A DNA stretch of 64,000 bases from Mobula birostris (taxonomy: Eukaryota): contig NC_092401.1 of assembly GCF_030028105.1 (NCBI RefSeq), positions 7,908,984 to 7,972,983 of the forward strand, given 5' to 3'. Made by a program: the position numbers and the translations under genes. Below are positions 23,107 to 54,454 of this stretch, in pieces (positions within the stretch are counted from its first letter, which is position 1; every line of letters begins with the position of its first letter). The notes beneath the pieces were generated by a model. That model saw nothing but the letters and a program-made list of their open reading frames with translations, did not search any database and was not told where the DNA came from.

Positions 23107-23384
23107 TTATTGTTTTATCTGTGCAGAATTGATAGATGTAACACCATATATATTAGTTTGTGAGTGGTTATTGTTTAGAACTCCGTCTGAATTCACTTCT
23201 GTTAAAGGAAAAGATTCCTGATCAATCCCAGAAGGGATTTCCTGATTTTTGTGGGGTGCTGCATTCTTGACCTCGTAATGCCCTGTTTTCCGAGCTCTGT
23301 TTCTTAGGATGCAGGCGACGACCAGCATGACTAACAGTATTAGGATGGGTAGCAAGATTGCCAGCACCATCTTCCAATCATCAC
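23107..23384 (-). CDS. ICAM-family gene, terminal exon (transmembrane helix plus cytoplasmic tail)
   Basis: gttccccAG|GT GAT GAT TGG AAG ATG GTG; TM segment MVLAILLPILILLVMLVVACIL, then RNRARKTGHYEV; TAA at 23109-23107. Confidence 0.9.
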
Positions 23385-24045
23385 CTGGGGAACATGCACA
23401 AAAGCCATTACAGAATCATTAACCATCTCAGGCAAATACATCAATTGTAAAACCACTGATCCTTCTGAAAATCCCAGAATTTTGTAGATTTCATGTACCT
23501 TACTGTTTACTCTCCCATGCTTTCTCATTTTCTATATAAACACATACTACACATGAAACATTTTGACATGGCACTTCACAACCAATGAAAATCATTTCTG
23601 AGGAGTAATGACTGAAGGTCAAATTTCACCCAGCAAGACCAGAAACAAACACGTGGCAATGCCATCATCTGCTTTAATAATGCTGATTGAGGGTCAAGTA
23701 GTGACCAGGATTCCATTAGAAATCATCTGCTCTTTGAGTTTGTGTCATTTTGTTTTAGCTACAAGCCTGAGAAAGCAGGCTGTTTAATGCCTCAGCTGGA
23801 AGGCAGCACCTCGGAGAGTGCTCCCTCAGGTTGGAAGCCCGTGATGAGCTGTGTGCCCAGGGTTCAGAGCTAGGCCCATTGCTGTTTGGTCAAGAACATA
23901 CAGGGACATGTTTAGGAAGTTTACAGATGACAAGAAGAATAGGTGGCATTATGGACAGTGGAGGTGGTTATCGGGAATTACAGGGAAATCTTGATCGGCT
24001 ATGTAAGTAGACAGAGGAATAGCAAATGGAGTTTAATTCAGATAC

Positions 24046-24325
24046 GGAGGCACGGTAACATTGTGGTTAGCACAGCGCTTTACAGGACCAGCAACCCAGG
24101 TTCAGTTCCTGCCACTGTCTGTAAGGAGTTTGCATGATCCCACTGTGACTGTATGGGTTTCCTCTGAGTTCCTCCCACAGTCCAAAGACCTACCAGCTGG
24201 TAGGTTAACTGGTCATTGTAAATTGTCCCGTGATTAGGCTAGGGTTCAATCAGGGGTTGCTAGGTGGCAATAGAACAGAAAGAGCCGGAAAGGACTGTCC
24301 CATGCTGGAACTCAATCAATATATA
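24046..24325 (+). mobile_element. tRNA-derived V-domain SINE inserted in a CR1 fragment
   Basis: Same head, core and tail as the 19277 copy. Confidence 0.85.
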
Positions 24326-24594
24326 AATTTGAGGTGTTGCATTTTGGGAAGTGAAGTTAGTGTAGGACTTTGCACAGTGAACGGCAGAGCCCTGGGGTGT
24401 GTGCAGAACAGAGAGATCGAGTGATCTCAGTTCCCTTAAAGTGCTGTCAGAAGCAGACAGTATGGTGACAATGGCTTTTGGCACACTGACCTTCATCAGT
24501 CAGAGTATTGAGGGTAGCGTCTGTACAGGATGTCAGTGGGGCCACATTTGGAATAGTTTTCCGTTCCACTTGTCCTTTCACTGGAAAGATGTTG

Positions 24595-25520
24595 TCACCC
24601 TCACCCACATCTCCTGCATTTCCCGAACATCCGTGCTCACTCCATCATCCCACCACCTTAACAGTGATCGAGATCCTCTTGTCCTTATCTACAACCCCAT
24701 GAGCCTCTGCATCCAACACATCATTCTCCTCAACGTCCACCATCTCCAAAACGATCTTACCACTAAACATATCGTTACCTCCTCACTCTGCAGAGATCAC
24801 TCCCTCAGTGATTCCCTTCTCCATTTGTCCCTCCCCATTAAACTTCCTCCTGGCACATATCCCAGCAAGTGGCCAAAGTGCTCCACCTGCCCATTCACAT
24901 CCCTGCTCACCTCCATTCAGGGCCACAAACAGTCCTTCCAGGTGAGGCAACACATCCCCTGTGAATCTGCTGGGTTGTCTATTCTGTCCAGGGCTCCCAA
25001 TGTGACCTCTCCTACACTGATGAGCTCCATCGTTCATTGGGGGACAGCTTTGTCGAGCGCCTCCGCTCCATCTGCCAAGACCTTTTAATTCTGATTCCCA
25101 TTCATGTCCATCCATGGTCTCCATTGTTCCAAGATGAGGCCACCCTCAAAGTGAAGGAGCATCAGCTGGGTAGCCATTCCTCCTGGGTAGCCTCCAACCT
25201 GATGGCATGAATCTTGATTTCTCCTTCCGGTTCAAAAAAATTCCCTCCCACTTTCCTCTTTTGCTATTCCCTCCTGAGAGCAGTTACCTCTTCTCACTTG
25301 CCTATCAGCTCCCCCTGGGTCTCCTCCTCGTTCCCTTTCTACTGTGGTCCACTGTCTTCTATCAGATTCCTTCCTCCCCAGTCCTTCATCTTTCCCATCC
25401 ACTTAGAATCACCTTTCACCATCCCTATTATCCCTCCCCTCCACCCACCTTTTTAGTCTGGTTTCTTCCCCTTCCTCTCCAGTCCTGAAGAAGGGTGTCA
25501 GCCCGAAACGTAGACTGGTA
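24595..25520 (+). mobile_element. Penelope-like element, 5'-truncated, with GIY-YIG endonuclease remnant
   Basis: ORF 24399-25088 segment PLVLIYNP...PGTYP...CSTCPF...FQVRQHIPCES, followed by 3' repeat with hammerhead. Confidence 0.85.
25479..25518 (+). ncRNA. Minimal type-I hammerhead ribozyme motif (Penelope-associated)
   Basis: Stem I CCAGUC/GACUGG; CUGAAGA; extra A; stem II GGGU-GUCA-GCCC; GAAA; palindromic ACGU; GUA cleavage triplet. Confidence 0.7.
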
Positions 25521-25773
25521 TGAACAGTGAAGAGGCCAGTTACAAAGCAACACTGTTTGAGGCAGAGATCTCAAAGCAAAACACTGCAGATGCTGAAAAT
25601 CTGAAATAAGTACACTAGAATGGGAATACTTAGAAGTAAACAGGGTTAACCTTCCAGACCTTTCATTTGATCCAACTTGAAGCTCTGTTTCTCTGTTCCA
25701 AGATGCTGTTGGACCTGCTGAGTATCCCAACATTTTCTGTCTTCATTACTCTTAAAAGGTAGTTTGCCCATTT

Positions 25774-26011
25774 CAACACACACAAAATGCAGGAGGAACT
25801 CAGCAGGCCAGGCAGAATCTGTGGAAAAGAGTAAACAGTCGATGTTTCGGACTGACACCCTTCAGCAGGACTCACGAAGGGACCTGGTGAAGAGTCTCAG
25901 CCTGAAACATCGACTGTTTATTCTTTTCCACAAATGTTGCCTGGCCTTCTGAGTTCCTCCAGCATTTTGTGTGTGTTGCTTTGGATTTCCAACATCTACA
26001 GACTTTCTCAT
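25774..26011. mobile_element. Short Penelope-derived inverted-dimer (hairpin) insertion
   Basis: 96-bp inverted arms at 25774-25869 and 25883-25978; perfect 12-bp TSD GTTTGCCCATTT at 25762-25773 and 26012-26023. Confidence 0.85.
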
Positions 26012-26414
26012 GTTTGCCCATTTGCTTCTTTGCTGTTGGTGTGCAGAGGAATAGGGAAAAATAATGAATAACAGGACGTCAATCTCAGGAGTCAGACAGC
26101 TCAGTTTAACACCGCATCTGACAGCTGGTATGTCTGAGACTGCTTTCTCAGTACTGCACAGGACACTAGCCTAGTTTTAATGCCCAAGATACTCGAGAGG
26201 GATTGAACCGCCAATCTCCCGACTCGAGGCAGGAGTACCATCCGACGAGCAACACACGGTCTGATGTAGAGAGAGATTGTACACCTTTGTTTATCCTGGG
26301 CATGTCATAACTCTCAGCATTTACTGGTGATCACTCAGGGATGATACCTCAGCTCTGAAATGGTTTATTATTTATTTTCTTATCCATGCACACCGACCAA
26401 GGTAACTTACTGAC

Positions 26415-26696
26415 CTTCCATCTTGATTTCCACTTGCTCCTCATCCGTTCCAAATTTATTGCTGGCTCTACACTTGTAAATTCCTTTATGTTCTGATGTT
26501 GCCTGGGAAATGTGGAGAACCCCAGGAAGGTCGGTTTCCCCTGCGACTCCCTGACCGGGTCTTTCCCACGTCAGTGTTACTTGGGGGTTTCCACTGGAGT
26601 GACAAGTGACTGTAACTTCATCATCTACTCTGATGAAGACTGAAAACCTGGACACGGTTTTGTTATTTACTGATATAGTTGTGTTTCGTGGTTTAT
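26415..26696 (-). CDS. ICAM-family gene, exon for Ig domain 6
   Basis: ctcttttccAG|AT AAA CCA CGA...ATG GAA G|GTCAGT; 282 bp, phase 1-1. VTCHSSGNPQVTLTW...HKGIYKCRASNKFG. Confidence 0.92.
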
Positions 26697-26719
26697 CTGG
26701 AAAAGAGTGAAAGGAGTGA

Positions 26720-27240
26720 AATTAACCAGCCCCTCCCATAGGACATAGAACAGTACAGCACAGGGTGGGCTCTTTGTCCCATGATGTTGTACCGACCTTT
26801 ATAAACCTATTCCATCGACAACCCAACCCCTCCCTCCTACACAGCCCATCGTCCTCCATTCTTCTTTCATTCACGTGCCTATCTAAGTCTCTTAAATGTC
26901 CCTTATGTATCCGGCTCAACACCCTCCCCTGACAGTGCAGTCCAGACACTTCCTACTGACTATGTAAAAACTTGCCTCTGAATCCGTGGCTCACCATAAA
27001 AGGATGTCCTCTGCTACAGCCATTACCTGCCGGGGAATTAGGCGCTGGCTGTCCACTCTTCCTACGCCTCTTACAATCTTACACAATCATCCTCCTTGGC
27101 TCCAAAGAGCTCACTCAACCTTTCCACAGAAGACAGGCTCTCTAATCCAGGCAGCATCCTGGTGAATCTCCTCTGCACCATCTCTAAAGCTTCTTCATCT
27201 TTCCTATAATGAGGCGACTGGACATCACTACACTGTGACT
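26720..27240 (-). mobile_element. CR1 LINE 3' fragment
   Basis: KDEEALEMVQRRFTRMLPGLE in ORF 27071-27556. Confidence 0.75.
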
Positions 27241-27879
27241 CCAAAAGGCTGGAAAATCGAATTTGACTGTATGCTGAGCTCACTTCAGAGCAGCTGTGGT
27301 CAAAGTCCCGAGAGGCTTCAATCCAGAGTTCACTCTCAGTAAACAAACCATCTCTCTCTGCAATGAGCCCAGAACTCTCGTTGTCGTCAGGCTGAGAAAC
27401 AACAGATTCTTTCGAGCCGCATGAGCTCCTTTTAACCAGAAGCATTTTAAGAGAGCCTTGTGCAGGGAGCAGTCCCACTGTCTGCTTCTCTGGTAGGGGG
27501 TGGGGGTGTGATTCACCACCAGGCCACAGTTTTCTCCAGGAAACACCAACCCTCATTCATGCCACGAGGTGAAGTATCTCAGCACTAACTCACTGTGTCC
27601 ACTGTGGCTCATGGGAGCACCACCAGTCTTGTTTCAAACCGTTCTGGATTGAAGTTGTACGCCAGAGACTGGAGCACAATATCGAGGCCGGAGTGGTGGT
27701 GAACCTATGGCATGTGTGCCCAGGATGGCACAGGCAGAAACTTTGTTGGCATGCAGCAATGCCCCTTGATTCTTCTGATTTTTTTCATTTATTTCAATGT
27801 CTCTGTTATACTTTTATTAATAGTAACTTAATGAATGCACAAATTGTTACTTATGTGTAAGTAACAATTACACATTGTA

Positions 27880-28270
27880 ATAGAGTCATAGAAAAGTACA
27901 GCTCAGGAACAGGCCCTTCGGTCCATCTAGTCCATGCCAAAACTTTGTAAACAGCCTTCTCCCATCGACCTGCACCGGGACCATAGCCCTCCATATCCCT
28001 ACCATCCATGAACTGATCCAAACTTTGCATAAATGTTGAAACTGCCACTTGCAATTGGCAGCTCATTCCACACTGTCACACCTCTGAGTGAAGAAGACTC
28101 CTCTCATGTTCTCCTTAAACTTCATACCTTTCACCCCTACCTCATGGCCTCTGGTTGTAGACCACCCAACCTCAGTTGAAAAAGCCTGCTTTTATTTACC
28201 CTACCGATACCCCTCATAATTTTGTATACCTCTGTACTATCTCTTCTCAATCTTCTACATTCTAAGGAAT
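27880..28270 (-). mobile_element. CR1 LINE 3' fragment
   Basis: CR1 tail agagtcatagaaaagtacagc...ggcccttcgg and antisense RT end. Confidence 0.7.
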
Positions 28271-28717
28271 AAGCTCCTAGTAATAAGTAAAGGTATTTAC
28301 TATAAACACTATGAATAAAGGCTTTTCCTTCAAAGAGTTCATATCTAATTTAATTGATTTGGAAATCAAAATCTATTAATCCCATCAAGTCACTGAACTG
28401 TAAACATTTAAACCATTTTTGATAATGTTGTTCACATTGTAAATCCATGCTGTATTTCAATATTTATGCACATTTTATTCCACATTCATGATTTAAACTT
28501 TAAGTGTTGAATGTTGTTTCATTTCCTTTTTAACTAAGACATTAAGCTGAAGTTCCATTTTGTAGAGTTGCCATTCTGAAGAGGAACAGAATTCACCCTT
28601 GTGCCCTGGGCATATTTTGTTTCTGTTTTTGATGATATTGTACAGACAGGGAATAAAGCAACTTATTCTGCTCCCATGTCTTATGGTCTATTCCACAAAG
28701 GAACCTCCTATACTTAC

Positions 28718-28963
28718 ACAAAATCTCTGCATGGTGAGAGGAGTTGGTGGAACCAATATCATTGCTGACTCTGCACATGTACTGACCACTGTCTCCCAGT
28801 TGGACTGAGGGGATGTGCAGTGTCTCACCACTACTGATCGTTTTTCCATCTTTGATCCAGCGCACCTCCGGAACTGGGTTGGCATCTGCGCGACAGGTTA
28901 AATTCTGGGATTTCCCTTCAATCCAGTCCTGCTTTTCAGAGATCTGTGCTTTCCTTGGAGAAT
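28718..28963 (-). CDS. ICAM-family gene, exon for Ig domain 5
   Basis: aactttacAG|AT TCT CCA AGG...ATT TTG T|GTAAGT; 246 bp, phase 1-1. WIEGKSQNLTCRADANPVPEVRWIKDG...DSGQYMCRVSN. Confidence 0.92.
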
Positions 28964-29119
28964 CTGTAAAGTTGGTTGGAAATAGAAATTAAAAGCTGAA
29001 AGTTAAGAGCACAGGATCGTTTCTTGGTGATTTTTGGTGCTGACCAAGTTCCACTTCTCAGAGTAGAGAGACTTTTACTTTAATAGCCTGTGCTACCACC
29101 AAGCACAGCAAGTCAAATG

Positions 29120-29495
29120 CACTCAGTGGCCACTTTATTAGGTATACCTGAAGACCCCAGTTTGGTCTTCTGCTGCTGTAGCCCGTCCTCTTCACATTTC
29201 AACATGCTATGCATTCAGAGATGCTCTTCTGCACACCACTGTTGTAACACATGGTCATTTGAGTTCCTGTCACTTTCCTGTCAGTTTGAACCAGTCTGGG
29301 ACTCTCCTCTGAACTCTCCTGTTAACAAGGTGTTTTTGTCCACAGAATCACCGCCCACTGGATAGCTTTTGTTTTTTTGCACCATTCTCTGCAACTCTTG
29401 TTGTGCATGAAAATCTCAGGAGGTTGGCAGCTTGAGATACTCAAACCACCCTGTCTGGCACCAACAAGCATTCCACAGTCAAAGTCACTTAGATG
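29120..29495. mobile_element. Tc1-like DNA transposon fragment
   Basis: cactcagtggccactttattaggta terminus plus degenerate internal sequence; by resemblance. Confidence 0.5.
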
Positions 29496-29689
29496 CTAAT
29501 GTTTGATTGAAATGTGAATAAACTTTCCTATCCATGGACCTGTCCAAGTGCTTTTAAGACCATTTTGAGAGGATTAACATATAAAAGCAAAGAGGTAATG
29601 TTAAGGGTTTATAAAGCACTGGTGAGGCCTCACTTGGAGTATTGTGAGCAGTTTTAGGCCCCTCATCTGAGAAAGGATGTGCTGAAACA

Positions 29690-30840
29690 TAGAATAGAAA
29701 TATAGAAAACGTACAGCACAATACAGGCCCTTCGACTGACAAAGCTGTGCCAAATATGTCCCTACCTTAGAACTACCGAGGCTTACCCATAGCCTTCTAT
29801 TTTTCTAAGCTCCATGTATCCATCCAGGAGTCTCTTAAAAGACCCTATCGTTTCCGCCTCCACCACCACCAGCGGCAGCCCATTCCACGCCCTCACCACT
29901 CTCTGTGTAAAAAAACTTACCACTGACATCTCCTCTGTACCTACTTCCAAGCACCTTAAGACTATGCCCTCTCATGCTGGCCATTTCAGCCCTAGGAAAA
30001 AGCCTCTGACTATCCACACGATCAATGCCTCTCATTATATTGTACACCGCTATCAGGTCACTTCTCATCCTCCGTCGCTCCAAGGAGAAAAGGCCAAGTT
30101 CATTCAACCAGATGTTCCTCAATCCAGGCAACATTCTTGTAAATCTTCTGTGCACCCTTTATAGGGTTTCCATGTCTTTCATATAGTGAGGCGACCAGAA
30201 CTGAGCGCAGCACTCCAAGTGTGGTCTGACCAGGGTCTGATATAGCTGCAACATTACCTCTCGGCTCTTAAACTCAATCCCACGATTGATGAAGGCCAAT
30301 ACACCACATGCCTTCCTAACCACAGAGTCAACCTGTGTAGCAGTTTTGAGTGTCCTATGGACTCGAACCCCAAGATCCCTCTGATCCCCCACACTGCCAA
30401 GTGTCTTACCACTAATACTATATTCTACCATCATATTTGACCTACCAAAATGAACCACCTGATACTTATCTGGGTTGAACTCCATCTGCCACTTCTCAGC
30501 CCAGCCTTGCATCCTATCAGTGTCCCGCTGTAACCTCTGACAGCCCTCCGCATTATCTACAATATCCCCAACCTTTGCATCATCAGCAAATTTACTAACT
30601 TATCCCTCCACTTCCTCATCCAGGTCATTTATAAAAATCACAAAGAGTAGGGGTCCCAGAACAGATCCCTGAGGTACACCACTGGTCACCGGCCTCCATG
30701 CAGAATATAACCCGTCTACAACCACTCTTTGCCTTCTGTGGGCAAGACAGTTCTGGATCCACAAAGCAATGTCCCCTTGGATCCCATGCCTCCTTACTTT
30801 CTCAATAAGCCTTGCATGGGGTGCCTTATCAAACGCCTTG
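29690..30840 (-). mobile_element. CR1 LINE RT to 3' end
   Basis: ORFs 29835-30155, 30159-30512, 30600-30926 ([18 protein letters not shown]). Confidence 0.9.
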
Positions 30841-30847
30841 CCTCCTA

Positions 30848-31463
30848 CAAGGGGTGATTGATAAGTTTGTGGCCTAAGGTAGAAAGAGTCAATTTTAGAA
30901 AACCTAGCACATTTATTTTTCAACATAGTCCCCTCCTACATTTACACACTTAGTCCAACAGTCGTGGAGCATACGGATCCCTTCTTTGTAGAAGTGGTCC
31001 ACAGCAGGGGTGATTGATAAGTTTGTGGCCTAATGTAGAAGGAGATATTAACTTCAAACTTTCTGCATTATCACTCAAAGAGTTGAACTGCATGTGCATG
31101 TAACAAGAGCGACTTGGACCTCCAGGCAGTCCACAGCAGGGGTGATTGATAAGTTCGTGGCCCAATGTAGAAGGAGATGAGTTACTCAGCTCTCGTTACA
31201 TGCACGTGCAGGTCAACTCTGAGTGAAAATGCAGCAAGTTTGAAGTTAATAACTCATCTCTTCCTACTTTAGGCCACAAACTTATCAATCACCCCTGCTG
31301 TGGACCACTTCTGGAGGTCCAAGATGCCGACCTCTACAGAGAAGGGATCTGTATGCTCCACGACCGCTGGATTAAGTGTGTAAATGTAAGAAAAATAAAT
31401 GTGCTAGGATTTCTGAAATTGACTCCTTCTACCTTCGGCCACGAACTTATCAATCACCCCTCG
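30848..31463. mobile_element. Mariner-derived MITE with five TIR copies
   Basis: Flanked by TA...TA; aggggtgattgataagtt(t/c)gtggcc at 30850, 31006, 31138 (+) and 31271, 31436 (-); mariner C-terminal remnant EGICMLHDRWIKCVNV. Confidence 0.85.
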
Positions 31464-31469
31464 TATATT

Positions 31470-31960
31470 GAAACTGGAGAAGGCTCAGAGGAGGTTCATG
31501 AAAATGATTCCTTCATTGAAAGGCTTGTCACATGAGGAGCGTTTGACGGCCCTGGGCCTGTACTCACTGGAATTCAAAAGAATGAGGGGAATCTCACTGA
31601 AACCCATCAAGTGTTGAAAGGCCTCGATAGAGTGGATCTGGTGAGGAGAGTGGCAGAGTATAAGGCCAAAGGACAGTGCCACGGAATAGAGGGGCGTTCT
31701 TTTACAATGCAGATGTAGAATTTCTTCAGCCAGAGAGTGGTGAATCTGTGTAACTTGTTGCCATAGGAAACTATGGAGGCCAAGTCATTGGGTATACTTA
31801 AGGTGGAGGTTGATAGATTCTCGATTGTTCGGGGCATGAAAGGATGCAGGGAGAAAGCAGGAGATTGGGACGGACAGGGAGAATGGATCAGTCTTGATGA
31901 AATGACAGAGCAAAATCAATGGGCCAAATGGCCTAATTCTGCTCCTAAATCTTATGGTTT
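31470..31960 (+). mobile_element. CR1 LINE 3' fragment
   Basis: gagggggaatctcactgaaac...cagagagtggtgaatctgtg...tggcctaattctgctcc. Confidence 0.8.
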
Positions 31961-36430: not shown

Positions 36431-36990
36431 ACTGTATGATAGCTGCGTGGTCCCATGGTGTTTTATACTTGCGTACTATTGTTTGCACAGATGAATGTGG
36501 TACCTTCAGGTGTTTGGAAATTGCTCCCAAGGATAAACCAGACTTGACATCATTTTCTGACCTCAATCTGATAGAAAATTTGTGGGCAGAACTGAAAAAG
36601 CGTGTGCGAGCAAGGAGGCCTACAAACCTGACTCAGTTACACCAGTTCTGTCTGGAGAAATGGAACAAAATTCCAGCAACTTACTGTGAGAAGCTTGTGG
36701 AAAGCTACCCAAAACGTTTGACCCAAGTTAAACAATTTAAAGGCAATGCTACCAAATACTAACAAAGTGTATGTTAACTTCTAACACACTGGGAAATTGA
36801 TGAAAGAAATAAAAGCTGAAATAAATCATCCTCTCTACTATTATTCTGACATTTCACATTCTTAAAGTAAAGTAGTGATCCTAACTGACATAAGACAGGG
36901 AATGTTTTCTAGGATTAAGTGTCAGGAATTGTGAAAAACTGAATTTAAATGTATTTGGCTAAGATGTATGTAAATTTCTGACTTCAACTG
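36430..36990 (+). mobile_element. Sleeping Beauty-like Tc1 remnant: inverted N-terminal piece plus C-terminus and right TIR
   Basis: Minus strand KSGLSLGAISKHLKVPHSSVQTIVRKYK; plus strand DLNLIENLWAELKKRVRARRPTNLTQLHQFC; ends tgtatgtaaatttctgacttcaactg|TA. Confidence 0.85.
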
Positions 36991-36999
36991 TATGTGAAG

Positions 37000-38748
37000 A
37001 GCAAGAGGATAAGACGTGAGTGAATAGGACCAATCAAGTGTGACAGTGGAAAAGTGTGAATAGAACTGGAGGAGATGGCACAGGTATTTAGTGAATACTG
37101 AAGCAAAGTATTCATTATAAAGAATGATCTTGGCGATTGTAGGGATAACTTGCAGCGGGCCGAAAAGCTTGAGCATGTAGATATTAAGGAAGAGGATGTG
37201 CTGGAACTTTTGGAAAGCATCAAGTTGGATAAGTCACCAGGACCAGATGGGATGTACTCCAGGCTACTGTGGGAAACGAGGGAGGAGGATGGGAGAGATT
37301 CCGGAGCATTGGAGGGTTGCGAATGTTGTTCCCTTATTCGAGAAAGGGAGTAGGGATAGCCCAGGAAATTATAGACCAGTGAGTCTTACTTCAGCGGTTG
37401 GTAAATTGATGGAGAAGATCCTGAGGGGTAGGATTTCTGAATATTTGGAGAGGCATAATATGATTAGGGATAGTCAGCATGGCTTTGTCAAAGGCAGGTC
37501 GTGCCTTAGGAGCCTGATTGAATTTTTTGAGGATGTGACATTGATGAGGGTAGAGCCATAGATGCAGTGTATATGGATTTCAGCAAGGCATTTGATAAGG
37601 TACCCCATGCAAGGCTTATTGAGAAAGTAAGGAGACATGGGATCCAAGGGGACATTGCTTTGTGGATCCAGAACTGGCTTGCCCACAGAAGGCAAAGAGT
37701 GGTTGTAGACGGGTTATATTCTGCATGGAGGCCGGTGACCAGTGGTGTACCTCAGGGATCTGTTCTGGGACCCCTACTCTTTGTGATTTTTATAAATGAC
37801 CTGAATGAGGAAGTGGAGGGATAGATTAATAAATTTGCTGATGACACAAAGGTTGGGGCTGTTGTGGATAGTGTGGAGGGCTGTCAGAGGTTACAGCAGG
37901 ACATTGATAGGATGGAAAACTGGGCTGAGAAGTGGCAGATGGAGTTCAACCCAGATAAGTGTGAGATGATTCATTTTGTAGGCCAAATATGATGGCAGAA
38001 TATAGCATTAATGGTAAGACTCTTGGCAGTGTGCAGGATCAGAAAGATCCTGGGGTCCAAGTCCATAAGACACTCAAAGCTGCTACGCAGGTTGACTCTG
38101 TGGTTAAGGCGGCATACGGTGCATTGGCCTTCATCAATTGTGGGATTGTGTTTAAGAGCTGAGAGGTTACATTGCAGCTATATAGGACCCTGGTCAGACC
38201 CCACCTGGAATACGGTGCTCAATTCTGGTCGCCTCACTACAGGAAAGACATGGAAACCACAGAAAGGGTGCAGAGGAGATTTACAAGGATATTGCCTGGA
38301 TTGGGGAGCATGCCTTATGAGAATAGGTTGAGTGAACTCAGCCTCTTCTCCTTGGAGCGACGGAGGATGAGAGGTGACCTGATAGAGGTGTACAAGATAA
38401 TGAAAGGCATTGATCGTGTGGATAGTTAGAGGCTTTTTCCCGAGGGCTGAAATGGCTAGCACAAGGGGGCATAGTTCTAAGGTGCTTGGAAGTAGGTACA
38501 TAGGAGATGTCAGGCGTAAGTTTTTTTTTAAAAAAAACACAGAGTGGTGAGTGCGTGGAATGGGCAGCTAGCAGTGGTGGTGGAGGCGGAAACGTCAGGG
38601 TCTTTTAAGAGTCTCCTGGATGGACACATGGAGCTTAGAAAAATAGAGGGCTATGGGAAAGCTTAGGTAGTTCTAAGGTAAGGACATGTTTGGTACTGCT
38701 TTGTGGGCTGAAGGGCCTGTATTGTGCTGTAGGTTTTCTATGTTTCTA
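37000..38748 (+). mobile_element. CR1 LINE, about 1.75 kb of ORF2 3' part
   Basis: [34 protein letters not shown], (ttctatgt) tail. Confidence 0.95.
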
Positions 38749-38842
38749 TAAGCAGACGCTAATGTGACAATGGCCCCATGCGTCCCCACAGTACTGATGC
38801 ATCAAAATACGAGAGATGATTGATCCAGTCAAACACTCCCAA

Positions 38843-39350: not shown

Positions 39351-40271
39351 CTGTAACAACAGAAAACATTGTTAGGAACTTTCTCAAAGTGAGTTCTGCA
39401 GCCCTTCTGTACCACTAGACTGAGGTAGCAAATGGAACTCTTTTGAAGTCTGTCTGTGATACAGCACCCACCTACCTCACTGTGTGTCTAGTGGCTAAAG
39501 AAATTGCTGTGGGAATTATCAAAATCCACCCCACCCCCAACAGTTCCCAGCATCATTCACTCTTGACCCAATCTCATCAAAGCAAATGACACATTGGTTC
39601 AGTGCATCTTTGAGTTTGAGCAATCCTGGTAAAGCTGTCATTCACCACAACAGGGTTAGTTTAGCTAGTAACCAGCCAGTGGTTTCTTGGTCATTTCAGA
39701 TAGCACTTTGCTTCAATGCAATGATGAATAACCCACAGAATTAATTCATTGGGTATGAAGTGTGTGAGTGTGTGTGCGCGTGCGTGCGTAGAGAGCGCAC
39801 ACGTGTTATATATACACTGTGCATCTAATTGCAACTTGTAATTTATGTATTGCACCTTGGGTATGAAGTACTTTGGTATATTGTGAGGGTGAGAGCCTGT
39901 GCGGAATATATTTTACTGACAGTGCATGTACGTTGTGAAATTTGTGGCAGCAGTACAGTGCAATACATAAAACTATAAATTGTGAATATATATATATATA
40001 TACACACACACACATACACTCTATATCTAATTGCAACCTATAGATTATTTTATGTATTGTGCTGTACTGCTGCCACAAATCAACAAATGTCACAACACAA
40101 GTCAATAATGATAAACCTGATTCTGATTTAACTTTGCTGCAAACTTCTGTCTCCTTTCTATCTAATGATACGTTTGTTGGCAGCCTTTGATTCCACATTC
40201 AGTTTCTATCTCTGTCAAATTGCCAGTCGCTGCTTCTGCAACACAATTTTATCCTGGTACATCAGATATTG

Positions 40272-41057: not shown

Positions 41058-41351
41058 CGTACACGTCAATGGTAATGCTATCATTCTTTGATGAAACTGA
41101 TGGATAGTCCTCAAAATCTGCCATACAGTTGAGTTCAGTCACACCGGTCTCTCGTGGTGTCCATGTAGCTGTTGCCTGGACTGTGGTGGGATTTGATCTA
41201 CTGGCAACTGAATTCCATTCCTCACCATCTTGAAACCATTTTAATCTCACCTTCTCGGCAGGGTAGATGTTTGAGACCTCACACGTCAATGTGGTCTCCT
41301 GATTTACTTCTACAGGGTCTCTGTTGAGAATCCTTGGAGGCTCTGCAAAAG
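41058..41351 (-). CDS. ICAM-family gene, exon for Ig domain 3
   Basis: gtattgcAG|CT TTT GCA GAG...GTG TAC G|GTAAGT; 294 bp, phase 1-1. LTCEVSNIYPAEKVRLKW...LNCMADF. The alternative AG 9 nt downstream would create TAG, so it was excluded. Confidence 0.92.
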
Positions 41352-42590: not shown

Positions 42591-42898
42591 GTCTATTACC
42601 ACCACCTGCACTGACCACCAAGAAGGACACCGGAGTATCAGGTAAGAGTGCAGAATTTGCAGGAGTTTGGAATTGTTTCAGTGATCTTCAGCCAAATAAT
42701 CTCTTCTACTTCCATGGCTCTCTGAAGTTGTAAACTTTGAGTCTCAGTTCAAGACAAAGAAGTTTTGCTGAACAGATAAAACAAGAAATGTGAAAGCCTT
42801 TAAAGCAGGGCCACTCATTGCTTATTTTTGCAAATTCTTAACCAATGTGGGGGGGGGGGGAGTTGGGGGTGGCAGTTCAATTTCAAAATGGAACTCAC

Positions 42899-43210
42899 AG
42901 TAAGTTTTCAGAGTCACAGATGCGTTTGCAATCCATTTGGTCGTGTTAGGGCCTAAGTTCAACTCTGCCAAGCAGGTGTACACCAGTCCATCGTCTGAAA
43001 TACTTGGATTGAAATTAAGGACGTTCTTCAGTGGACCATCATCTGGGTAACCTGGTTCCTCTGTGGAATTACGCTGAACAACCTCACTCCCTCTGAGCCA
43101 GGTGAGTACGAGTTTGTTCTTTGGATAGACCTTCGGGCCAGTACACTCCAGCTGATACGGTTTGTTAACTTGCAGCACGTCAGGAGGTGGAACAATGCTT
43201 AAATTTCGAT
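42899..43210 (-). CDS. ICAM-family gene, exon for Ig domain 2
   Basis: ctcctttaacAG|AT CGA AAT...ACT TAC T|GTGAGT; 312 bp, phase 1-1. LECTGPKVYPKNKLVLTWLRG...YTCLAELNLG resembles ICAM D2. Confidence 0.92.
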
Positions 43211-43271
43211 CTGTTAAAGGAGAATCATGTTAACAAAATTCATGCAAATTACAAATCTAGATTATGCTTGT

Positions 43272-43945: not shown

Positions 43946-44029
43946 ACTTGTCCCACCTTTCATTCCATTCACTGTCATTTCAGGTGACTTCAGAACTTTG
44001 AAATACTCTTTAATATTAAGTCTACCTTC

Positions 44030-45115: not shown

Positions 45116-45393
45116 GCAATTTATTCAGTCACAGAACATTCACCTCTGGCATATCCATATCTCTGAATTCGGTAAGCCGGTGACGACACTGGTGTGCCTA
45201 GTCACTTAAAGGCTTAGCAAACAAACTGCTTTCCTCCAAAGACATTAGCAAACCAATCAACAATTCAACTGCTCCATGGGGCAAGTCAAGTCTATTGTCA
45301 TTAACTATATTCCTATATATATAGTTAAATGAGACAATGTTTCTTCAAACCAGGGCATAAGCACAATAGTACACATAACACACTTATTTCTGG

Positions 45394-46248
<855 letters not shown>

Positions 46249-46379
46249 TATGTACTTAACACTAAAAATCATTACATACTACTAACATAATGACAATATG
46301 ATGTGTGCAGGGTAACTAGAGCAACACAGCAGCATCAGCAGAATACCTGAATCAGCTGTTGAATAAAATCAAACAACGA

Positions 46380-47020
46380 CAGGCTTTCGGTCTCCACCCA
46401 TGGTGCCGTGGTTTCATGAAAAAGTTACAGTAAACTGTATTTGTATTGTACCTGTTTCAGGTTTTATGTAAGATATATATATTAAAGAAAATCACCATTT
46501 CAAACTTGTTCTGATGTTCGATTTTTATCAGTGACCATCTTGGCAAACTTAACAACTAATTTCTCTGCTGCTTCATGATCAGCAGATGTTTACCTTTAAA
46601 ATTTTTAAATCTTTAAAAATTTAATGTTTTGCTTTTCAGAAATTTCTGTAATTGCCCAGCATATTCAGAAATCCCTTCAATTTTCAGTTTGTCATGATAG
46701 ATCTTTGCTTGTTTCATGATCAGCATACCGTCAAGCGGCACATGTTCACTGCCACTAATGAATCCACTCTTTCAAGATGATTGAGAGCTTAATTTTTCAC
46801 TTTATGCAGTGTTTTTCCATTCTTCGTTAACTCTGTTCATTACATATGAGGTCACCCTCAGAACTCCCTGTGAAACACAGACCTGTGTATTGCTTGGGAA
46901 CTTTCACAGCAACTTGTGGAATTTTCCATTTGTGGTGTCATGTCAGCATTCAAAAAAAGATAAATTTGGATTTCGGAGGTTTTCAGATTTGGGTATTTTG
47001 GATAAGGGGTAATCAAGTTG
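46380..47020 (-). mobile_element. Tigger/pogo (CENP-B type) transposon remnant
   Basis: Antisense LKEWIH...VPLDGMLIMKQAKIYH; MER2/Tigger-like terminus before TA. Confidence 0.7.
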
Positions 47021-49208
47021 TATTGACTTCTACTTTATCTATTTTTAGTTCCCTTGCAAATAACAACTTTTGTACCATTGCCTGGGAGAACTGACTCATC
47101 CAAATGCAGAGCAAATTATTTTGTTCTAACTAATGTGTCTTCGACATTCTCAGACGTTTCATCTCTTCAGCTTTGAACAGAGTTGTCACTGAGAAGAATC
47201 ACTTTAATTATTTGGTCTGGAGACTTGTACGAAACTGTACTCAGAACCTTCCTTACTGCTGGCAGAATCAGTTCTTCTCCAATTGTATTGGGCTTTCCAG
47301 ATTTAACAATCAGCTAAGAAATATTGTATGAAGATCAGAAACCATCACCGTTTTGTTGAGGAGTGCTAGCAAACATGTTTTGAAGTGTTTTCCATTTCTG
47401 AAAGTCTTCACAAAATGACTGAAAATAAGCCAAGTGCTTGTTTGCTTTATCAAATGTCCAAGGAGCCTGGACAGTTCCATTTCTTCATTTGAAAACAAAG
47501 GCTTTTTTCACACTACAGACACATTGGCTGCTATTGGTTGCTTGGTGCTGGTACAAATCCACATTTCGCATACTCCACATTATGCTGTGCACACTTCTTT
47601 TTCATTTGATCTGTATCTGCCATTTTTGATATGGATTAACTATGGTCAATCACCTATTGTTTAAATCCAACCTCAAATACAGTGATCAATAAATGGGAAA
47701 GTTATAACGTCATCTTAGCTCAGGCAAAACCTGACCCTCTGCCTGAACGTACATAAAGCAGGGCAGTGATATCTCTGTTGGGCCGTGGACTGGAGAAATG
47801 CACTCAAGACCATTTGAAAGGGCAGATTCTGAACTTTACCATATCGAACGCTGGAACTGCATCACTGCATGGTTAGATTACAGAAATTGTACTAGCTAAC
47901 ACTGTACTACAATAGTGAACAGCAATAATGTGTGGGCCAGGCCTGGAATAACTATTTCTTCAGTCCAGATTTCTCCTGATATGCCAAATAGAGAAGTATC
48001 ACATTGCTTTTCAGCAACTATAACTCTCTTCAAGCAAATTCTAAGAGAATGGTGGGTTAGAAAGAAACAAGGTGATGATGTGATCATTGTAATCAAACAT
48101 GAGGCACTGTGGATTATATCCCTATAATAAGTAATTCATTTCTTAAATCAAGCCTGGAATCCCTTAGGTTTTAAAATATTTTTTGTTTTTGTATTTGCAC
48201 AGTTTGTTGTCTTTCACACATTTGTTGTTTCTCTGCCACATTGGATGTGGCCTTTCATTGATTCCATTGTGTTTCTTGGATTAACTGTGCCCACAAGAAG
48301 GTGAAGCTCAAGGTTGTATGCGGTGACACAATGTATATATACTTTAGTAATAAATTTACTTTGAACTTTGATAACATTAACTACATGAATATATTTACTG
48401 AGGCAAGATGTTTCCCAAAACTGAATTACTAAATCATTTGGCAGACTCAAGAACCTAATCCCCATGTGAGCAAAACATGGTGAAATCTACACAAGTTCAA
48501 TTTGTTCAGAATTTGGAACTAGAATCAAGTAAACTGTAAGCAAAGACTTAAATCCTACATTGTTTAAATATTTTAAAAGGGTGTTAACTGAAAAATAGCA
48601 TTAAATGATTCACTCTGCTGCTCTCCTGCTGAATACAAAGCGGATTCTGAACTTAGATGTTAGATTCTTCACCACTGAGTTTTCCCAAAAGTCTCTGTCC
48701 GTGCCCTTCAGCAGAGTTCGCAGCCCCAGAGTCAATCAGATGTCCCCTATTTTTGATCATTTCCCACCTCTTCTAACTCAGTCAGGTGCGATAATGCAAT
48801 GGAAGCTATCATAGGCTGTTGTGGTTTTTGTCTGCAAACTTCGTGGAAATTTGCCCTGCTAATACGATGAACTGAATACCGAGGCTTTGGGCCTACTCTG
48901 GGGATTTGGATTTAAGAACTCAATTTGGTTCGGAATGCTGTTGTTGCTCACTTCTATTGCTGATATGATTTGTGTTTGTCCTCTTTCTCTATGGGCACTG
49001 GTCTTAATATTTTGTTTAACCTGGGTTCTTTCAGGTCTTTTGCTTTGTGACTGCCTGTTAGCAAACAAATCTCAAGGTTGTATAATTTATATATTCTTTG
49101 ATAATAAATGCACTTTGAATCTGTGACTTTTATAAATTAATTGATGCCTTCCTATGTAATGGGAAATCTTTAATCCAAAGTACACTTAAATTATACAACG
49201 TAATAGAT

Positions 49209-49288
49209 CAGGGGTTCCCAACCTGGGGTCAATGGACCCCTTGCTTAATGGTGTTGGACCATGGCACAAAAAGTGTTGGCAACCCCTG
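49209..49288. mobile_element. 80-bp hAT-type MITE with 8-bp TSD
   Basis: TIRs caggggttcccaac / gttggcaacccctg; TSD TAATAGAT / CAATAGAT. Confidence 0.85.
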
Positions 49289-50106
49289 CAATAGATTTAA
49301 TTTGATGTTACTTTGATTTTAAGCCTCTTTTTAAAAAATGTTAAACAATACAAAATTTTAGCTACAATTTACACAAGTTTAAACACACAAAAATCAGTAC
49401 AATATTTTCATTACAGAATGTCTGCCTGCAGCAGACTTCATTACAAGCTAAAGTCACTGTGGCCTCTTTAACTAATTAATCATTAAAACAAAACTACACA
49501 ATGGCATTGTTAAATTGCTTTTATTGGTTTTTCTTTACATACAACAGAACATCACCACACAGATCATGGGATCCCAACCAGGAAAAAAAAGTCAATTACA
49601 CAGTTACGCCTGTATATTTCAGAATCAGATTTAATATCGCTGGCTTACGTCAAAAAATCTGTTGACTTTGCAGCAACAGTACAAGGCGATACATGATAGA
49701 GGGAAAAAAAATAACTGTGAACCTTCCAGTAAGCTGGTGCGTGTGGTCACAGTGGCATCTATGGGGTCAACAAAAGGTGTTAATGTCATATTTAAACAAA
49801 TTTTTAATGCTTGAAAGATCCTGCTATACATTAAAAATTTAAAGAACAGCCCCTTCAGGTCTACCCCATCAGCGAGTTGCTCGCTGGCAGAGACAATGAA
49901 GGAGCTATGCATCGTGCTGCTCCCCAAGTCGAAGGCAACGAACAGTCTAATAGCGAGCAACTGTCTTGGTTGCTTTTCTTGTGATCGTAAGTCCATTTTG
50001 GATATAGTTAATGTGTTAATAGAGAATGCTGCAAGGTTGATTCACTGATTTATTGGTGGGGAGCAGGGGCGGGTGGCGAGGAAGCTGCATGGCCTCAGTC
50101 GTAGCT

Positions 50107-50475
50107 CGGACTAGGCCTCAAACTACAGTGCCGCCAGTTTACAGCTGCCAGAGGAGAGGCGTCAGAGCCAGTGCACTCCACCAGGGTGGGTGTCCAGGCT
50201 GGAATCGGTGCTGACCACCCCCCCCCCCCACCCCAACCCCGAGTGTTCAAGTAGCAGAAGACAAGCCCTGTTGTCGTCATCTGTACAGCATTCAGTGGAC
50301 TCGGCCTCAAGCTGCAGTGTTTCCTGTTTACAGCTACCAGGAGAGGGACGTCAGAGCCAGTGCACTCTACCAGGGGCATCGTGGCAGAGCATCAGGGCTG
50401 GAATTGGTGCTGCTACCCCTCCCCCACCCCTCGTTCGGCAGAAGACAAGCTCTATTGTAGTTGACTGAAGATTTC
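50107..50475 (+). repeat. Unclassified ~185-bp repeat in tandem dimer (third copy at 53245-53420)
   Basis: ctcggcctcaag...tttacagct(a/g)ccag...gtcagagccagtgca...ggctggaat...gcagaagacaagc read in all three copies. Confidence 0.75.
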
Positions 50476-50544
50476 AATAGACTCAGGGTTTGATTTATAC
50501 ATTTTGCATAGTCGTATTTTACTAATGTCCTTTATGACCATAAA

Positions 50545-51435
50545 TAGGGGTCCCCAACCTTTCTTGCACCGCAGACCGGCCGATTCGGGGGGGGGGGGGG
50601 GGAGGAGAGAGGGGGAGAGCGGTGTTCAAGTGGGGTTAAACTCACCTCAACATGTCTTTTACAGTTAGGGTTGCCAACTTTCTCACTCCCAAATAAGGGA
50701 CAAAAGTAGCAGTCAAATCCTGACGAAGGGTCCCTGCCCCAAACATTGACTATACCTCTTCCTATAGCTGCTACCTGGCCTGCTGCGTTCACCAGCATTT
50801 TTTGTGTGTGTTGACAGGACACTTTGTGTTTACCCCAAGAAAGACTACCATGACCATGAAGCCTTGCGTGGGCACCTGTGTGCGTACGCGTGCCGTGCGC
50901 ATATGTGACATGCGCGTGTGCGTATGTGCCGATTTTTTTTCACAAATCGGTTTTGGCTTAATCTCCCCGACTACACTGAACATACATTATTTCTACTTTA
51001 TATAGGCTGTGTATTTATCATATCATTCCTGCTTTTACTATATGTTAGAGTTATTTTAGGTTTTGTGTGTTATTTGGTATGATTGGGTAGGTTATTTTTT
51101 TGGGTCTGGGAACGCTCAAAAATTTTTCCCATATAAATTAATGGTAATTGCTTCTTCGCCTTACGCCATTTCGGCATGAAAGGTTTCATAGGAATGCTCT
51201 ACCTTAGAGGGGGAAATACAGGACAAGGGTGGTTCCGTATGGGACAAACCAAATTAGCCCAATATACGGGATGTCCCGACAAATACGGGACAGTTGGCAA
51301 CCCTATGTTAAAGTTCAACAGTGTGTGACAGGGAATGAGGAAAGGTGCAGCTGACTCATATAGTTTCCTCACGGCCTGGTAGCACATGTTTTGCGGCCTG
51401 GTACCGGTCCGCGGCCCGGTGGTTGGGGACCACTG
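50545..51435. mobile_element. Composite hAT-type MITE with nested TIR element (50666-51305) and Penelope fragment
   Basis: Outer TIRs taggggtccccaacc / ggttggggaccactg; inner TIRs tagggttgccaact; flanks share CCATAA. Confidence 0.7.
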
Positions 51436-53110
51436 CCATAAGATATAGAAACAGAATTAGGCCTTTGGCACATTTCCTGCCTTCTGCCCCATATCCCTTC
51501 ATGCCCTGACCAATCAAGCATTTATCAGCCTCTGCCTTACATATACATAAAGACTTGGCCTCCGCTGCTTCCTGTGGCAAAGAATTCCACGGATTCACCA
51601 CTCTCTGGCTAAAGAAATAGCTCTTTATCGCCATTCTAAAAGGATGCCCCTCTATTCTGAGACTCACCCACCATAGGAAACATACTCTCCACATCCACTT
51701 TATCAAGCGCTTTCACCATTTTATAAGTTTCAATTAGGTCACCCTTCATTCTTCTGAATTCTAGTGAATACAGGACCAGAACCATCAAACATTCTTCATA
51801 TGACAAGGCATTCAATCCTGGAATCATTTTTGTGAACATCCTTTGAACTCTCTCCAGTTTCAGTACATCCTTTCTAAGATAAAGGGCCCTAAACTGCTCA
51901 CAAAGCTCCAAGTGAGGCCTCATCAGTGCTTTATAAAGTCTCAACACTACATCCTTGCTTTTATATTCCAGTCCTCTTGAAATGAATAGTAACATTGCAT
52001 TTGTCTTCCTCACCACAGACTCAACCTGCAAATTAACCTTTAGGGAATCCTGCTCAAGGACTCCCAAGACCTTCTGTGTCTCAAGTTTTTGTATTTTCTC
52101 TCCATTTAGAAACTAGCCAACCCTTTCATTTCTTCTACCAAAGTGCATGACCATACACTTCCCTACACTATATTCCATCTGCCATTTTTTGACCCATTCT
52201 CCTAATCTGTCCGAGTCTTTCTATAGCCTCAATACTCCCTCAAAACTACCTGTGCCTCCACCTATCTTCATATCATCTGCAAACTTTGTTGCAAAGCCAC
52301 ATTTTCATCATCCAGATCACTGATATACAACATAAAAAGAATCAGTCCCAGCACAGATCCCTGTGGAACACCACCAGTCAATGGTACCCAGCCAGAAAAG
52401 GTTCCCTTTATTCCCACTCTTTGCCTTTGGCCAATCAGCCACTGCTTTATCCATGCTAGAAACTTTCCTGTAATGCCATGCGCTCATAGCTTGTTAAGCA
52501 GCCTCAAGTGTGGCACCTTATGACCACTTGCTCCCAAGAGTTCTTTTCCTTATGCTCTCTAATCAATTCTGCTTCATTGCACAACAATCAATCCAGAATA
52601 GCTGATCCCCTAGTGCGCTCAACCAAAAGCTGCTCTAAAAAGCCATCTCATAGGCATTCTAGAAATTCTCCCGCTTGGAATCCAGCACCAACCCGATTTT
52701 TTCAATCTACCTGCATATTGAAATCCCCCATGACTATTCTAACATTGCCCTTCTGGCATGCATTTTCCATCTCCCATTGTCATTTGTAGACCACATCCTT
52801 ACTACTATTTGGGGATCTGTATACAACTCCCATCAGGGTCTCTTTACTCTGGCAGTTCCTTAGCTCTACTCACATAATTCAACGCCTTCCAACCCTATGT
52901 CACCTCTAATGATTTGATTTCATCTTTTACCAACAGAGCAACACCACCCCCTCTGCCTTCCTGCCTGTCCTTTCAATACAATGTGTATCCTTGGACATTA
53001 AGCTCCCAGCTACAGTCTTCTTTCAGCCATGATTCAGTGGTGCCTACCAACATCATACCTGTCAGTCTGTAACCATGCTAGAAGTTGATCTACCTTATTC
53101 TCCCATCTCC
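51436..53110 (-). mobile_element. CR1 LINE 3' part
   Basis: ORF 51636-52067 LMRPHLELC...RMKGDLIETYK. Confidence 0.85.
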
Positions 53111-53489
53111 TGCAACTTAGGGACGACTACCTCCCTGTAGCACTTGTCTATCATCTCATTCTCCTGTATGAGTGGAAGGTCATCCAGCTGCAGCTCCAGA
53201 CACTTAATACGTCCTTTATATGCTTGTTGTATTGAATATGCCAATAACTCGGCCTCAAGCCATGGTGTTGCCTGTTTACAGCTGCCAGGAGATAGTTGTC
53301 AGAGCCAGTGCAGTGTGGCATCCAGGCTGGAATCTGTGCTGCCCCCCTCCGCCCCCAACCCAAGTGTTCAATCAGCAGAAGGCAAACTATATTGTGGTCG
53401 TCTGCAGATTTTGGTGGCATTGGATGGCTTGAGTTTGAACTCTTATTGAGTGGTTGTATCTTTCTATCTTATACGTGCTATGTACACAA

Positions 53490-54030
53490 ACACACTAAAT
53501 AGTTAAATTAAACAAATTAAATTAGTGCAAAAATAGAAATAAAGTATGGGGTACTGTCCGTGGGTTTACTGTCCATTCAGAAATCTGATGGCAGAGGGGA
53601 AGAAGCTATTCCTGAATTACTGAGTGTGTGCCTTCAGGCTTCTGTACCTCCTCCTGATGGTAGCAATGAGAACAAGGCAATGAGCTGGGTGATGGGGGTC
53701 CTTATTGATGGACAATGCTTTTTTGAGGCATCGCTCCTTGAAGAGGTCCCAGATACTGTGGAGTCTAGTACCCATGATGGAAATATATTTACAATTTTCT
53801 GCAGCTTATTTCGATTCTGTGCAGTCACTCCCCCCGCCATACCAGACAGTGATGCAGCCAGTTAGAATGCCCTCCACGGTACATCAGTAGAAATTTGAGG
53901 ATTTTTGGAGTCAAACCAAATCTCCTCAAACTCCAATTAAATATAGCCACTGGTATGGCTCCTTTGTAGCTGCATCAATATGTTAGGTCCAGGATAGATC
54001 CTGAGAGATACTGACACTCAGGAACTTCTG
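53490..54030 (-). mobile_element. Rex1/Babar-type LINE 3' part
   Basis: ALFSLLPSGG motif, same family as 15050. Confidence 0.75.
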
Positions 54031-54178
54031 CTTGGACTTATCGCAGTATTAGGCTCAGTTGCATGCCAGGCACACAGTAGCATCTTTGTGTGAATTTTTT
54101 CAAATGATAAATTATTTATTTGCTGCCATTTATCCTATAACATTTTGCTATATACTCAGAATAAGAGATGTTACTTAC

Positions 54179-54454
54179 TGTACACTGGAACCACCAGTTT
54201 CCTCTCCCGCACTGCCGTTCCTGCAGATTGACAGATTACAGTACATGGCACTGTCAGATCCCATTTCTGGATACTCGAAAATCGGTCTGTAATCAACTTA
54301 TCAGCATGAGTTCTGTTGGGATTTAGCCCTGGTTTATATTCCAGAATGATCCTTGGGTTGTTACACATTGTACTGCAGGTCACCTCCAGGGACTCCCCGA
54401 ATTCCACCACTGGACGGCTGGTTTCGATCAAAACCTCAAATCCATACACTTCAT
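54179..54454 (-). CDS. ICAM-family gene, exon for Ig domain 1 (ICAM N-terminal type)
   Basis: Minus strand tctggcAG|AT GAA GTG...GTG TAC A|GTAAGT; 276 bp, phase 1-1. Encodes EVLIETSRPVVEFGESLEVTCSTMCNNPRIILEYK...PCTVIC...VVPVY, with the CxxxC...CxxxC pattern of ICAM D1. Confidence 0.9.

Follow-up and report, generated by a model that had tools for sequence, protein, structure and literature searches.

A probable ICAM-family gene with six immunoglobulin domains in the giant manta ray, laid out like a short ICAM-5

The intercellular adhesion molecules (ICAMs) differ in the number of their immunoglobulin (Ig) domains: ICAM-2 has only two, ICAM-1 and ICAM-3 have five and ICAM-5, which is neuronal in mammals, has nine; the vascular cell adhesion molecule VCAM-1 has seven, of which D1-D3 are repeated as D4-D6. 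The glutamates E34 of ICAM-1 and E37 of ICAM-3 and ICAM-5 bind the metal of the metal-ion-dependent adhesion site (MIDAS) of the alpha L I domain (PMC4237329), and the KKGEY motif of human ICAM-5 is an alpha-actinin-binding site (PMC4365481). One survey dates ICAM1 to bony fish, i.e. describes it as a late arrival (PMC7916592), and a paper analysing shark or ray ICAMs was not found in our literature search. Here, we describe a stretch of 64,000 nucleotides from the giant manta ray, Mobula birostris (contig NC_092401.1, positions 7,908,984 to 7,972,983; hereafter the window), which contains coding exons 2-8 of a gene that is intact and very likely a member of the ICAM family; its product is a type I membrane glycoprotein that has six Ig domains.

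The gene is read from the minus strand and its seven segments lie between positions 54454 and 23107. The exons were placed identically to those of the initial annotation, which had been made from the letters alone and had joined seven exons, all in phase 1, to a product of about 655 amino acids: each acceptor is an AG preceded by a pyrimidine-rich run, each donor has the form GT(A/G/C)AGT (GTAAGT, GTGAGT or GTCAGT) and the spliced product has a length of 655 amino acids with no internal stop codon. Domain 1 (D1), an Ig domain of the ICAM N-terminal type, is encoded by 54454-54179 (276 nt), as defined by splice sites, phase and the Pfam family ICAM_N. D2 with its TWLRG motif follows at 43210-42899 (312 nt; splice sites and phase), the C1-set-like D3 (NIYPAEKVRLKWF) at 41351-41058 (294 nt; chosen acceptor and Pfam) and D4, which lacks the Trp, at 39350-39069 (282 nt; splice sites and a hidden Markov model, HMM). 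Two I-set domains, D5 at 28963-28718 (246 nt; Pfam, HMM and motif alignment) and the membrane-proximal D6 at 26696-26415 (282 nt; Pfam and HMM), precede the last coding exon at 23384-23107 (278 nt including the stop codon at 23107-23109; splice sites and AlphaFold), which encodes the stalk, a hydrophobic transmembrane helix of 22 residues and a cytoplasmic tail of 67 residues. The spliced product thus has the six Ig domains, the helix and the tail that had been proposed. Every Ig domain carries two cysteines and D1 an additional pair; the estimate of about 13 N-glycosylation sequons was correct for the ectodomain (13 N-x-S/T), and one more sequon is located in the cytoplasmic tail.

For D3, the AG nearest to the frame was rejected as acceptor, since it creates a TAG codon across the junction; therefore, the AG nine bases upstream was taken, which places the exon start at 41351. 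An open reading frame at 56535 (MWFTICLPG...) was rejected as signal exon because it offers no phase-1 donor that could be used and because the annotated signal peptide is encoded outside the window. A tblastn search with all six domains against the whole window revealed no further Ig exons in the introns, and weak intronic Ig-like matches, such as 39873-39944 (E 0.2), were judged to be due to chance.

A full-length homologue search starting from a sawfish relative retrieved the protein XP_072104326.1 (P0043; 676 amino acids), named "intercellular adhesion molecule 1-like" [Mobula birostris]. Its residues 22-676 are identical to the spliced product (655 of 655 residues). Therefore, the DNA is that of the giant manta ray, in line with the cartilaginous fish that had been suspected as its source, and the public gene model, which is independent of ours, is built from precisely the same exons. 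The gene is thus already known, the exact protein being deposited in RefSeq under an ICAM-1-like name; what is added here is the match to ICAM-5 and ICAM-1 at the level of single domains, a conserved glutamate and tail motif, and evidence of constraint. The signal peptide of XP_072104326.1 comprises 21 amino acids and its exon lies outside the window; since the annotated gene spans 43,623 bp, this exon 1 is expected approximately 2.7 kb past window position 64000.

The assignment to the ICAM family had first been based on short motifs, and all of them were found again: CSTMC in D1, TWLRG in D2, a D4 without Trp and W-I-E-G...C-R-A-D-A-N-P in D5. The assignment is supported by Pfam ICAM_N, by a D1-D2 profile, by the register of D3, by domain HMMs and by Foldseek. 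D1 matched ICAM_N (PF03921) with 28.3 bits at a gathering cut-off of 21, and it has a pattern of two disulfides (CSTMC...CTVIC), the four cysteines of which are invariant in 20 relatives. D3 matched the Pfam families ICAM1_3_5_D2 (40 bits) and C1-set (31 bits), and I-set was found for D5 (5e-15) and D6 (4e-12). As a single sequence, D2, which is the best-conserved domain across the shark and ray paralogues, matched D2 of ICAM-5 (4e-5), VCAM-1 (2.5e-3) and ICAM-2 (4.5e-3) in the PDB. Single-domain PDB searches with D4, D5 and D6 gave generic Ig matches only and were dropped as family evidence.

For a more sensitive comparison, a profile of 20 D1-D2 modules from sharks, rays and chimaeras was searched against the PDB. 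It matched ICAM-2 with 2.9e-21 (79 bits), ICAM-5 with 6e-13 (52 bits), VCAM-1 with 6.5e-9 (39 bits), ICAM-1 with 5.5e-7 and ICAM-3 with 7e-6, and all matches down to the latter value were exclusively ICAM or VCAM-1. Below it, single-domain matches to SYG-2 (3e-4) and a shark antigen receptor (8e-4) were interleaved with D1-only chains of ICAM-1. A MAdCAM-1 chain was absent among the matches at E up to 1; a mucin-like region, as expected for MAdCAM1, is also absent from the manta protein, in which six compact Ig domains occupy the ectodomain. We regard the D1-D2 profile as decisive for the superfamily to which, judged by sequence, the gene would belong. The matches to ICAM-2 and ICAM-5 extend over both domains; that to ICAM-2 includes its CSTTC and LRG motifs, with the glutamate discussed below offset by one residue in the profile alignment. 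A second profile, built from D3-D4, found ICAM-1 as best match (3e-10; best stretch with an independent E-value of 7e-5 at residues 190-306) and ICAM-5 with 4e-8 at residues 197-314; the ICAM-1 stretch 190-306 corresponds to D3 running into D4 and the ICAM-5 stretch to D3, in register after D2.

A search with D1 covered 1.84 billion representative proteins and returned 23 matches, most of which are from sharks and rays and are named ICAM-1-, -2-, -4- or -5-like or VCAM1-like by their sources. Outside cartilaginous fish, it found two loach proteins and one pufferfish protein with multiple D1-D2 modules, one turtle protein, one insect protein (Homalodisca, E 1.3e-7) and one unnamed ENA protein. 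The turtle match belongs to a sauropsid ICAM-1/ICAM-5 family that also has members in birds, tuatara, anole and a bat. The predicted loach proteins (P0012, P0015) have four to five D1-D2 repeats, followed by a D6-type I-set domain, a transmembrane helix and a K-x-G-x-Y tail; the predicted pufferfish protein (P0022) has three repeats, in which the second domain is of the D3 type, and two D5-type domains, with no match to the transmembrane helix and tail.

To see how the six domains correspond to those of tetrapod ICAMs, HMMs were built for each domain from nine six-Ig orthologues and scored on tetrapod ICAMs. The D1 and D3 models found D1 and D3, respectively, the D4 model matched the D4 position weakly (14-19 bits) and the D5 model the fifth domain of ICAM-1-like and ICAM-5-like proteins with 29-39 bits. 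In sauropsid ICAM-5-like proteins, the D6 model always gave the best match to the last Ig domain (27-32 bits vs 9-22 bits for the D5 model), and it also matched the last one of the cypriniform fish relatives best; the model of transmembrane helix and tail matched tetrapod ICAMs as well. These comparisons show that D1-D5 are collinear with D1-D5 of ICAM-1 and ICAM-5 and that D6 is the counterpart of the I-set domain that lies next to the membrane in ICAM-5-like proteins. In its layout, the manta protein resembles a shortened mammalian ICAM-5, from which it differs in that the internal I-set repeats D6-D8 are missing; the identity is only about 15-23%, and the two are not one-to-one orthologues. 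To the five-domain layout of ICAM-1 and ICAM-3, with which it shares the Trp-less D4 and the D5 motif, it adds one membrane-proximal I-set domain, and where D5 of tetrapod ICAMs has an extra pair of cysteines, the manta D5 keeps the canonical Trp.

A model of the protein was predicted with AlphaFold from 14 relatives (mean predicted local distance difference test score, pLDDT, 78) and comprises six beta-sandwiches and a helix at residues 586-613. When it was compared with reviewed UniProt models by Foldseek, the top matches were ICAM-5 of mouse, human and rabbit, with E-values as low as 2.8e-33. Residues 11-563 of rabbit ICAM-5, i.e. its D1-D6, align with residues 1-584 of the manta protein at 23% identity and thus span its whole ectodomain. 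ICAM-1 aligns with residues 1-490, which are exactly the signal peptide and D1-D5, at 21-24% identity and a template-modelling (TM) score of 0.63-0.67. Superposition with PDB structures gave TM scores of 0.62 for D1-D5 of ICAM-1 (1z7z), 0.65-0.67 for D1-D4 of ICAM-5 (4oia) and 0.78 for D3-D5 of ICAM-1 (2oz4), and only ICAM chains superimposed over their full length.

Several observations weigh against an assignment to the ICAMs. As a single sequence, D1 found ICAM-2, -3 and -1 in the PDB only weakly (E 0.06-1), so that mammalian ICAMs were non-significant; a match to mammalian ICAMs from D1 comes from profiles only. The Pfam family for D2 of ICAM-1/3/5 (PF21146) matches the manta D3 (41059-41349) and not D2 (42900-43208). 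Despite this result, D2 pairs with D2 and D3 with D3 in direct comparison with ICAM structures. The D2, D3 and D4 models cross-match one another, the D4 model finding D2, and the second domain of tetrapod ICAMs is matched about equally by all three. On their own, D5 and D6 are generic I-set domains with DSCAM and contactin as best PDB matches. Finally, VCAM-1 ranks above ICAM-1 in the D1-D2 profile search, and its Foldseek E-values (about 5e-31) follow directly after, and are close to, those of ICAM-5.

The latter two findings would fit a gene corresponding, in cartilaginous fish, to VCAM1 or to a common ancestor of ICAMs and VCAM1, with a product that would bind alpha4-type integrins. Several members of the gene cluster described below indeed bear the NCBI label "vascular cell adhesion protein 1-like", and the D1-D2 module is repeated in some paralogues, much as VCAM1 repeats D1-D3. 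Like the manta protein, VCAM-1 starts with two domains of this superfamily, which are followed by a stalk of multiple Ig domains, including I-set domains, and it ends in a short tail. Nevertheless, we consider this origin rather unlikely, since the score of VCAM-1 in the profile search is below those of both ICAM-2 and ICAM-5. In the alignment, VCAM-1 has an extra residue inside the C-x-x-x-C motif (C-S-T-T-G-C), and its acidic residue is an Asp within an inserted C-D loop (Q-I-D-S-P) instead of a glutamate at the end of a strand, whereas the Glu of ICAM-5 aligns with that of the manta family. The fold of VCAM1 matched with a TM score of only 0.25 at 17-18% identity, far below the values for ICAM-1, and the closest tetrapod relatives found with D1 are the sauropsid ICAMs and not VCAM1. 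Moreover, the manta gene has neither an internal repeat of D1-D3 nor a second D1, and in its tail and last domain it agrees with ICAM-5-like proteins.

A second alternative to an ICAM-family gene is that the protein is a generic multi-Ig surface protein of the CD22/Siglec, PECAM1 or hemicentin kind, which would resemble ICAMs through the Ig fold only. This reading is disfavoured, and we hold it to be extremely improbable. The single-domain matches would agree with it, as CEA and CD22 are also among the best matches of D5 and D6 and as D3 matched SIRP, Ig constant domains, C1 domains of class II proteins of the major histocompatibility complex and CD22; two relatives are labelled "hemicentin-like" by NCBI, and Foldseek returned PECAM1 and CD22 among its matches. 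But D1 is of the ICAM_N type with a double disulfide and not a V-set domain, and, as described above, the strong D1-D2 profile matches are ICAMs and VCAM-1 alone. In addition, PECAM1 and CD22 reached TM scores of 0.25-0.38 at about 15% identity, and titin and contactin structures from the PDB gave TM scores of 0.17-0.29, being scored on summed Ig similarity.

Glu59 of the precursor, which lies in the I-L-E-Y sequence of D1, is shared by 90% or more of the shark and ray relatives and aligns with the Glu of the L/I-E-T motif of ICAM-5 and of the ICAMs of tuatara, anole, turtle, birds and the bat; in the AlphaFold model it is located directly after a predicted strand (54-57). Judged from these alignments, the integrin-binding Glu is conserved by position. 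At the other end of the protein, the cytoplasmic tail has the juxtamembrane motif R-K-T-G-H-Y-E-V, whose K, G, Y and V (K617, G619, Y621 and V623) do not vary among 14 relatives, and neither does A615. The motif is similar to the K-K-G-E-Y-N-V found in sauropsid ICAM-5; the K-I-R-K-Y of ICAM-1-like proteins from sauropsids is less close to it.

By analogy with the ICAMs mentioned above, we infer that the manta protein would be a ligand of an I-domain leukocyte integrin. D1 would present Glu59, at the end of what we take to be strand C, to the I-domain metal ion of a beta2-type leukocyte integrin, and the long stalk would project D1 away from the cell surface; inside the cell, the K-x-G-x-Y-x-V motif, which is similar to the alpha-actinin-binding KKGEY, might anchor the protein to cortical actin. 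Genes for integrin alpha M, alpha X and "Icam3" are expressed in myeloid cells in an atlas of the nurse-shark spleen (PMC10529500). On the opposite side, the only leukocyte integrin subunit identified in a chimaera as of 2014 was of the alpha E type.

The initial annotation had described six Ig domains as a number not seen in the human family. The number itself was confirmed, but it is no oddity: when 56 shark, ray and chimaera proteins were labelled with the domain HMMs, six turned out to be the common elasmobranch form. The layout D1-D2-D3-D4-D5-D6 followed by the transmembrane helix is found in ten or more species of sharks and rays, including stingray, sawfish and electric ray as well as sevengill, bullhead, bamboo, epaulette and white shark, and it occurs in two manta genes. 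The second manta paralogue (P0047) is 87% identical to the protein described here; orthologues of identical layout are 82% (stingray), 69% (sawfish) and 51-58% (sharks) identical. Neighbouring paralogues have four, five, six (with D3-D4 repeated) or eight Ig domains and stand in tandem, as seen for P0041, which is followed by P0027 after 4.9 kb; the eight-Ig gene (P0040) spans 35,164 bp. In the sevengill shark, too, the six-Ig gene has ICAM-like neighbours on the same strand, a gene for 367 amino acids upstream and a six-Ig-type gene for 661 amino acids downstream (L002 1-3312, 36042-36982). These data show that the manta gene is a member of a tandem cluster of sharks and rays in which the domain number varies through gain and loss of exon cassettes. 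Within 10 kb of the cluster members of manta, sawfish and sevengill shark, either ICAM-like genes or no genes at all were found, and no marker gene.

The relationship to the tetrapod genes was addressed with an unrooted tree of 76 D1-D2 modules, calculated without VCAM1 and MAdCAM1. It contains three starred clades, i.e. cartilaginous fish, tetrapod ICAMs and teleosts, and the modules of the cartilaginous-fish clade group by lineage and not by gene architecture. From these clades it follows that the manta gene is co-orthologous to the tetrapod ICAM cluster and not the orthologue of one particular ICAM; as a group, the shark and ray genes are co-orthologous to the ICAM cluster of bony vertebrates. 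That the tree has no outgroup counts against the family assignment.

Similarity among the copies shifts from domain to domain. D2 of the manta gene is 89% identical to that of a paralogue with the D3-D4 repeat but 79% identical to the D2 of the six-Ig sister gene and of the orthologue. For D4, identities of 90-96% were found among the stingray and manta paralogues (P0043, P0047, P0027, P0040, P0041, P0044), and D3 of the manta and stingray paralogues occurs in two types. On sequence grounds, this looks like exon exchange or homogenisation between the tandem copies.

Sawfish and sevengill shark, the orthologues of which were compared at the DNA level, have eight coding exons with phases as in the manta ray. 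Five of the six Ig exons have the same length in all three species (276, 312, 294, 246 and 282 nt); the exception is the D4 exon, which has 282 nt in sawfish but is 6 nt longer (288 nt) in sevengill shark. Ratios of nonsynonymous to synonymous substitution rates (dN/dS) were determined for the manta gene against each of the two species, with 95% bootstrap intervals for D2-D6 and for D1. They amounted to 0.43 and 0.45 for the ectodomain, and the intervals for D2-D6 were 0.26-0.49 and 0.32-0.55, demonstrating purifying selection. D1 is the fastest-evolving domain, with 0.83 and 0.61, and both of its intervals include 1. The gene is intact and under constraint.

These data also bear on a third alternative, according to which the exons are real but the six-Ig form is not the main product, either because the gene is silent or because shorter, exon-skipped isoforms dominate. 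Because all exons are in phase 1, any Ig exon could be skipped in frame, and a predicted isoform of the sawfish orthologue indeed lacks part of D4. Furthermore, a transcript-sized contig encoding the exact protein was not found, nor any other transcript for the gene, which also counts against the six-Ig product as such. Yet the splice sites are canonical throughout, no stop codon interrupts the frame, purifying selection acts on D2-D6, and the layout of six Ig exons and their lengths are kept in sawfish and sevengill shark, as is the architecture in the species listed above. We therefore regard this alternative as very unlikely and the six-Ig protein as the probable product of the gene.

As an ICAM-type integrin ligand by sequence, with the metal-binding Glu and an ICAM-5-like tail, the protein would place such a ligand at the base of the jawed vertebrates, and the result suggests that the architecture of neuronal ICAM-5 is old and did not arise as a novelty of mammals. 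Tentatively, and with more doubt than confidence, one may go further and propose that the six-Ig layout with a KKGEY-like tail was the ancestral ICAM of jawed vertebrates, which was expanded in ICAM-5 and truncated in ICAM-1 and ICAM-3, while the tandem copies of sharks and rays would keep reshuffling or homogenising individual Ig exons, leading to mosaic genes whose D1 evolves rapidly. In practice, the benefit is modest, the protein being a candidate ligand for studies of leukocyte adhesion in sharks and rays. In addition, the genes neatly illustrate a family built from Ig-exon cassettes, with phase 1 throughout the exons and a domain number that differs between neighbouring genes.

Apart from the exons, the window contains remnants of mobile elements. 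The 10-kb intron between D4 and D5 has an inverted pair of reverse-transcriptase fragments of a long interspersed nuclear element (29694-30841 and 37583-38749, about 1.15 kb each, 86-94% complementary), between the arms of which no exon is located. Translations of open reading frames revealed fragments resembling Tc1/mariner transposases in the introns and in the region upstream of the gene, at 36436-36762 (+), 45590-45967 (+), 60928-61233 (-) and 62074-62235 (+). Finally, 39 codons at 14541-14657 (-) resemble the second half of D1 (13 of 39 residues identical; E 3.8e-4 in the tblastn search against the window), with N-R-T, I-T-D, V-Q-Q-W and the Cys in register and stop codons just upstream. 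Going by this resemblance, the stretch may be the relic of a decayed D1 exon between the six-Ig gene and its eight-Ig neighbour.

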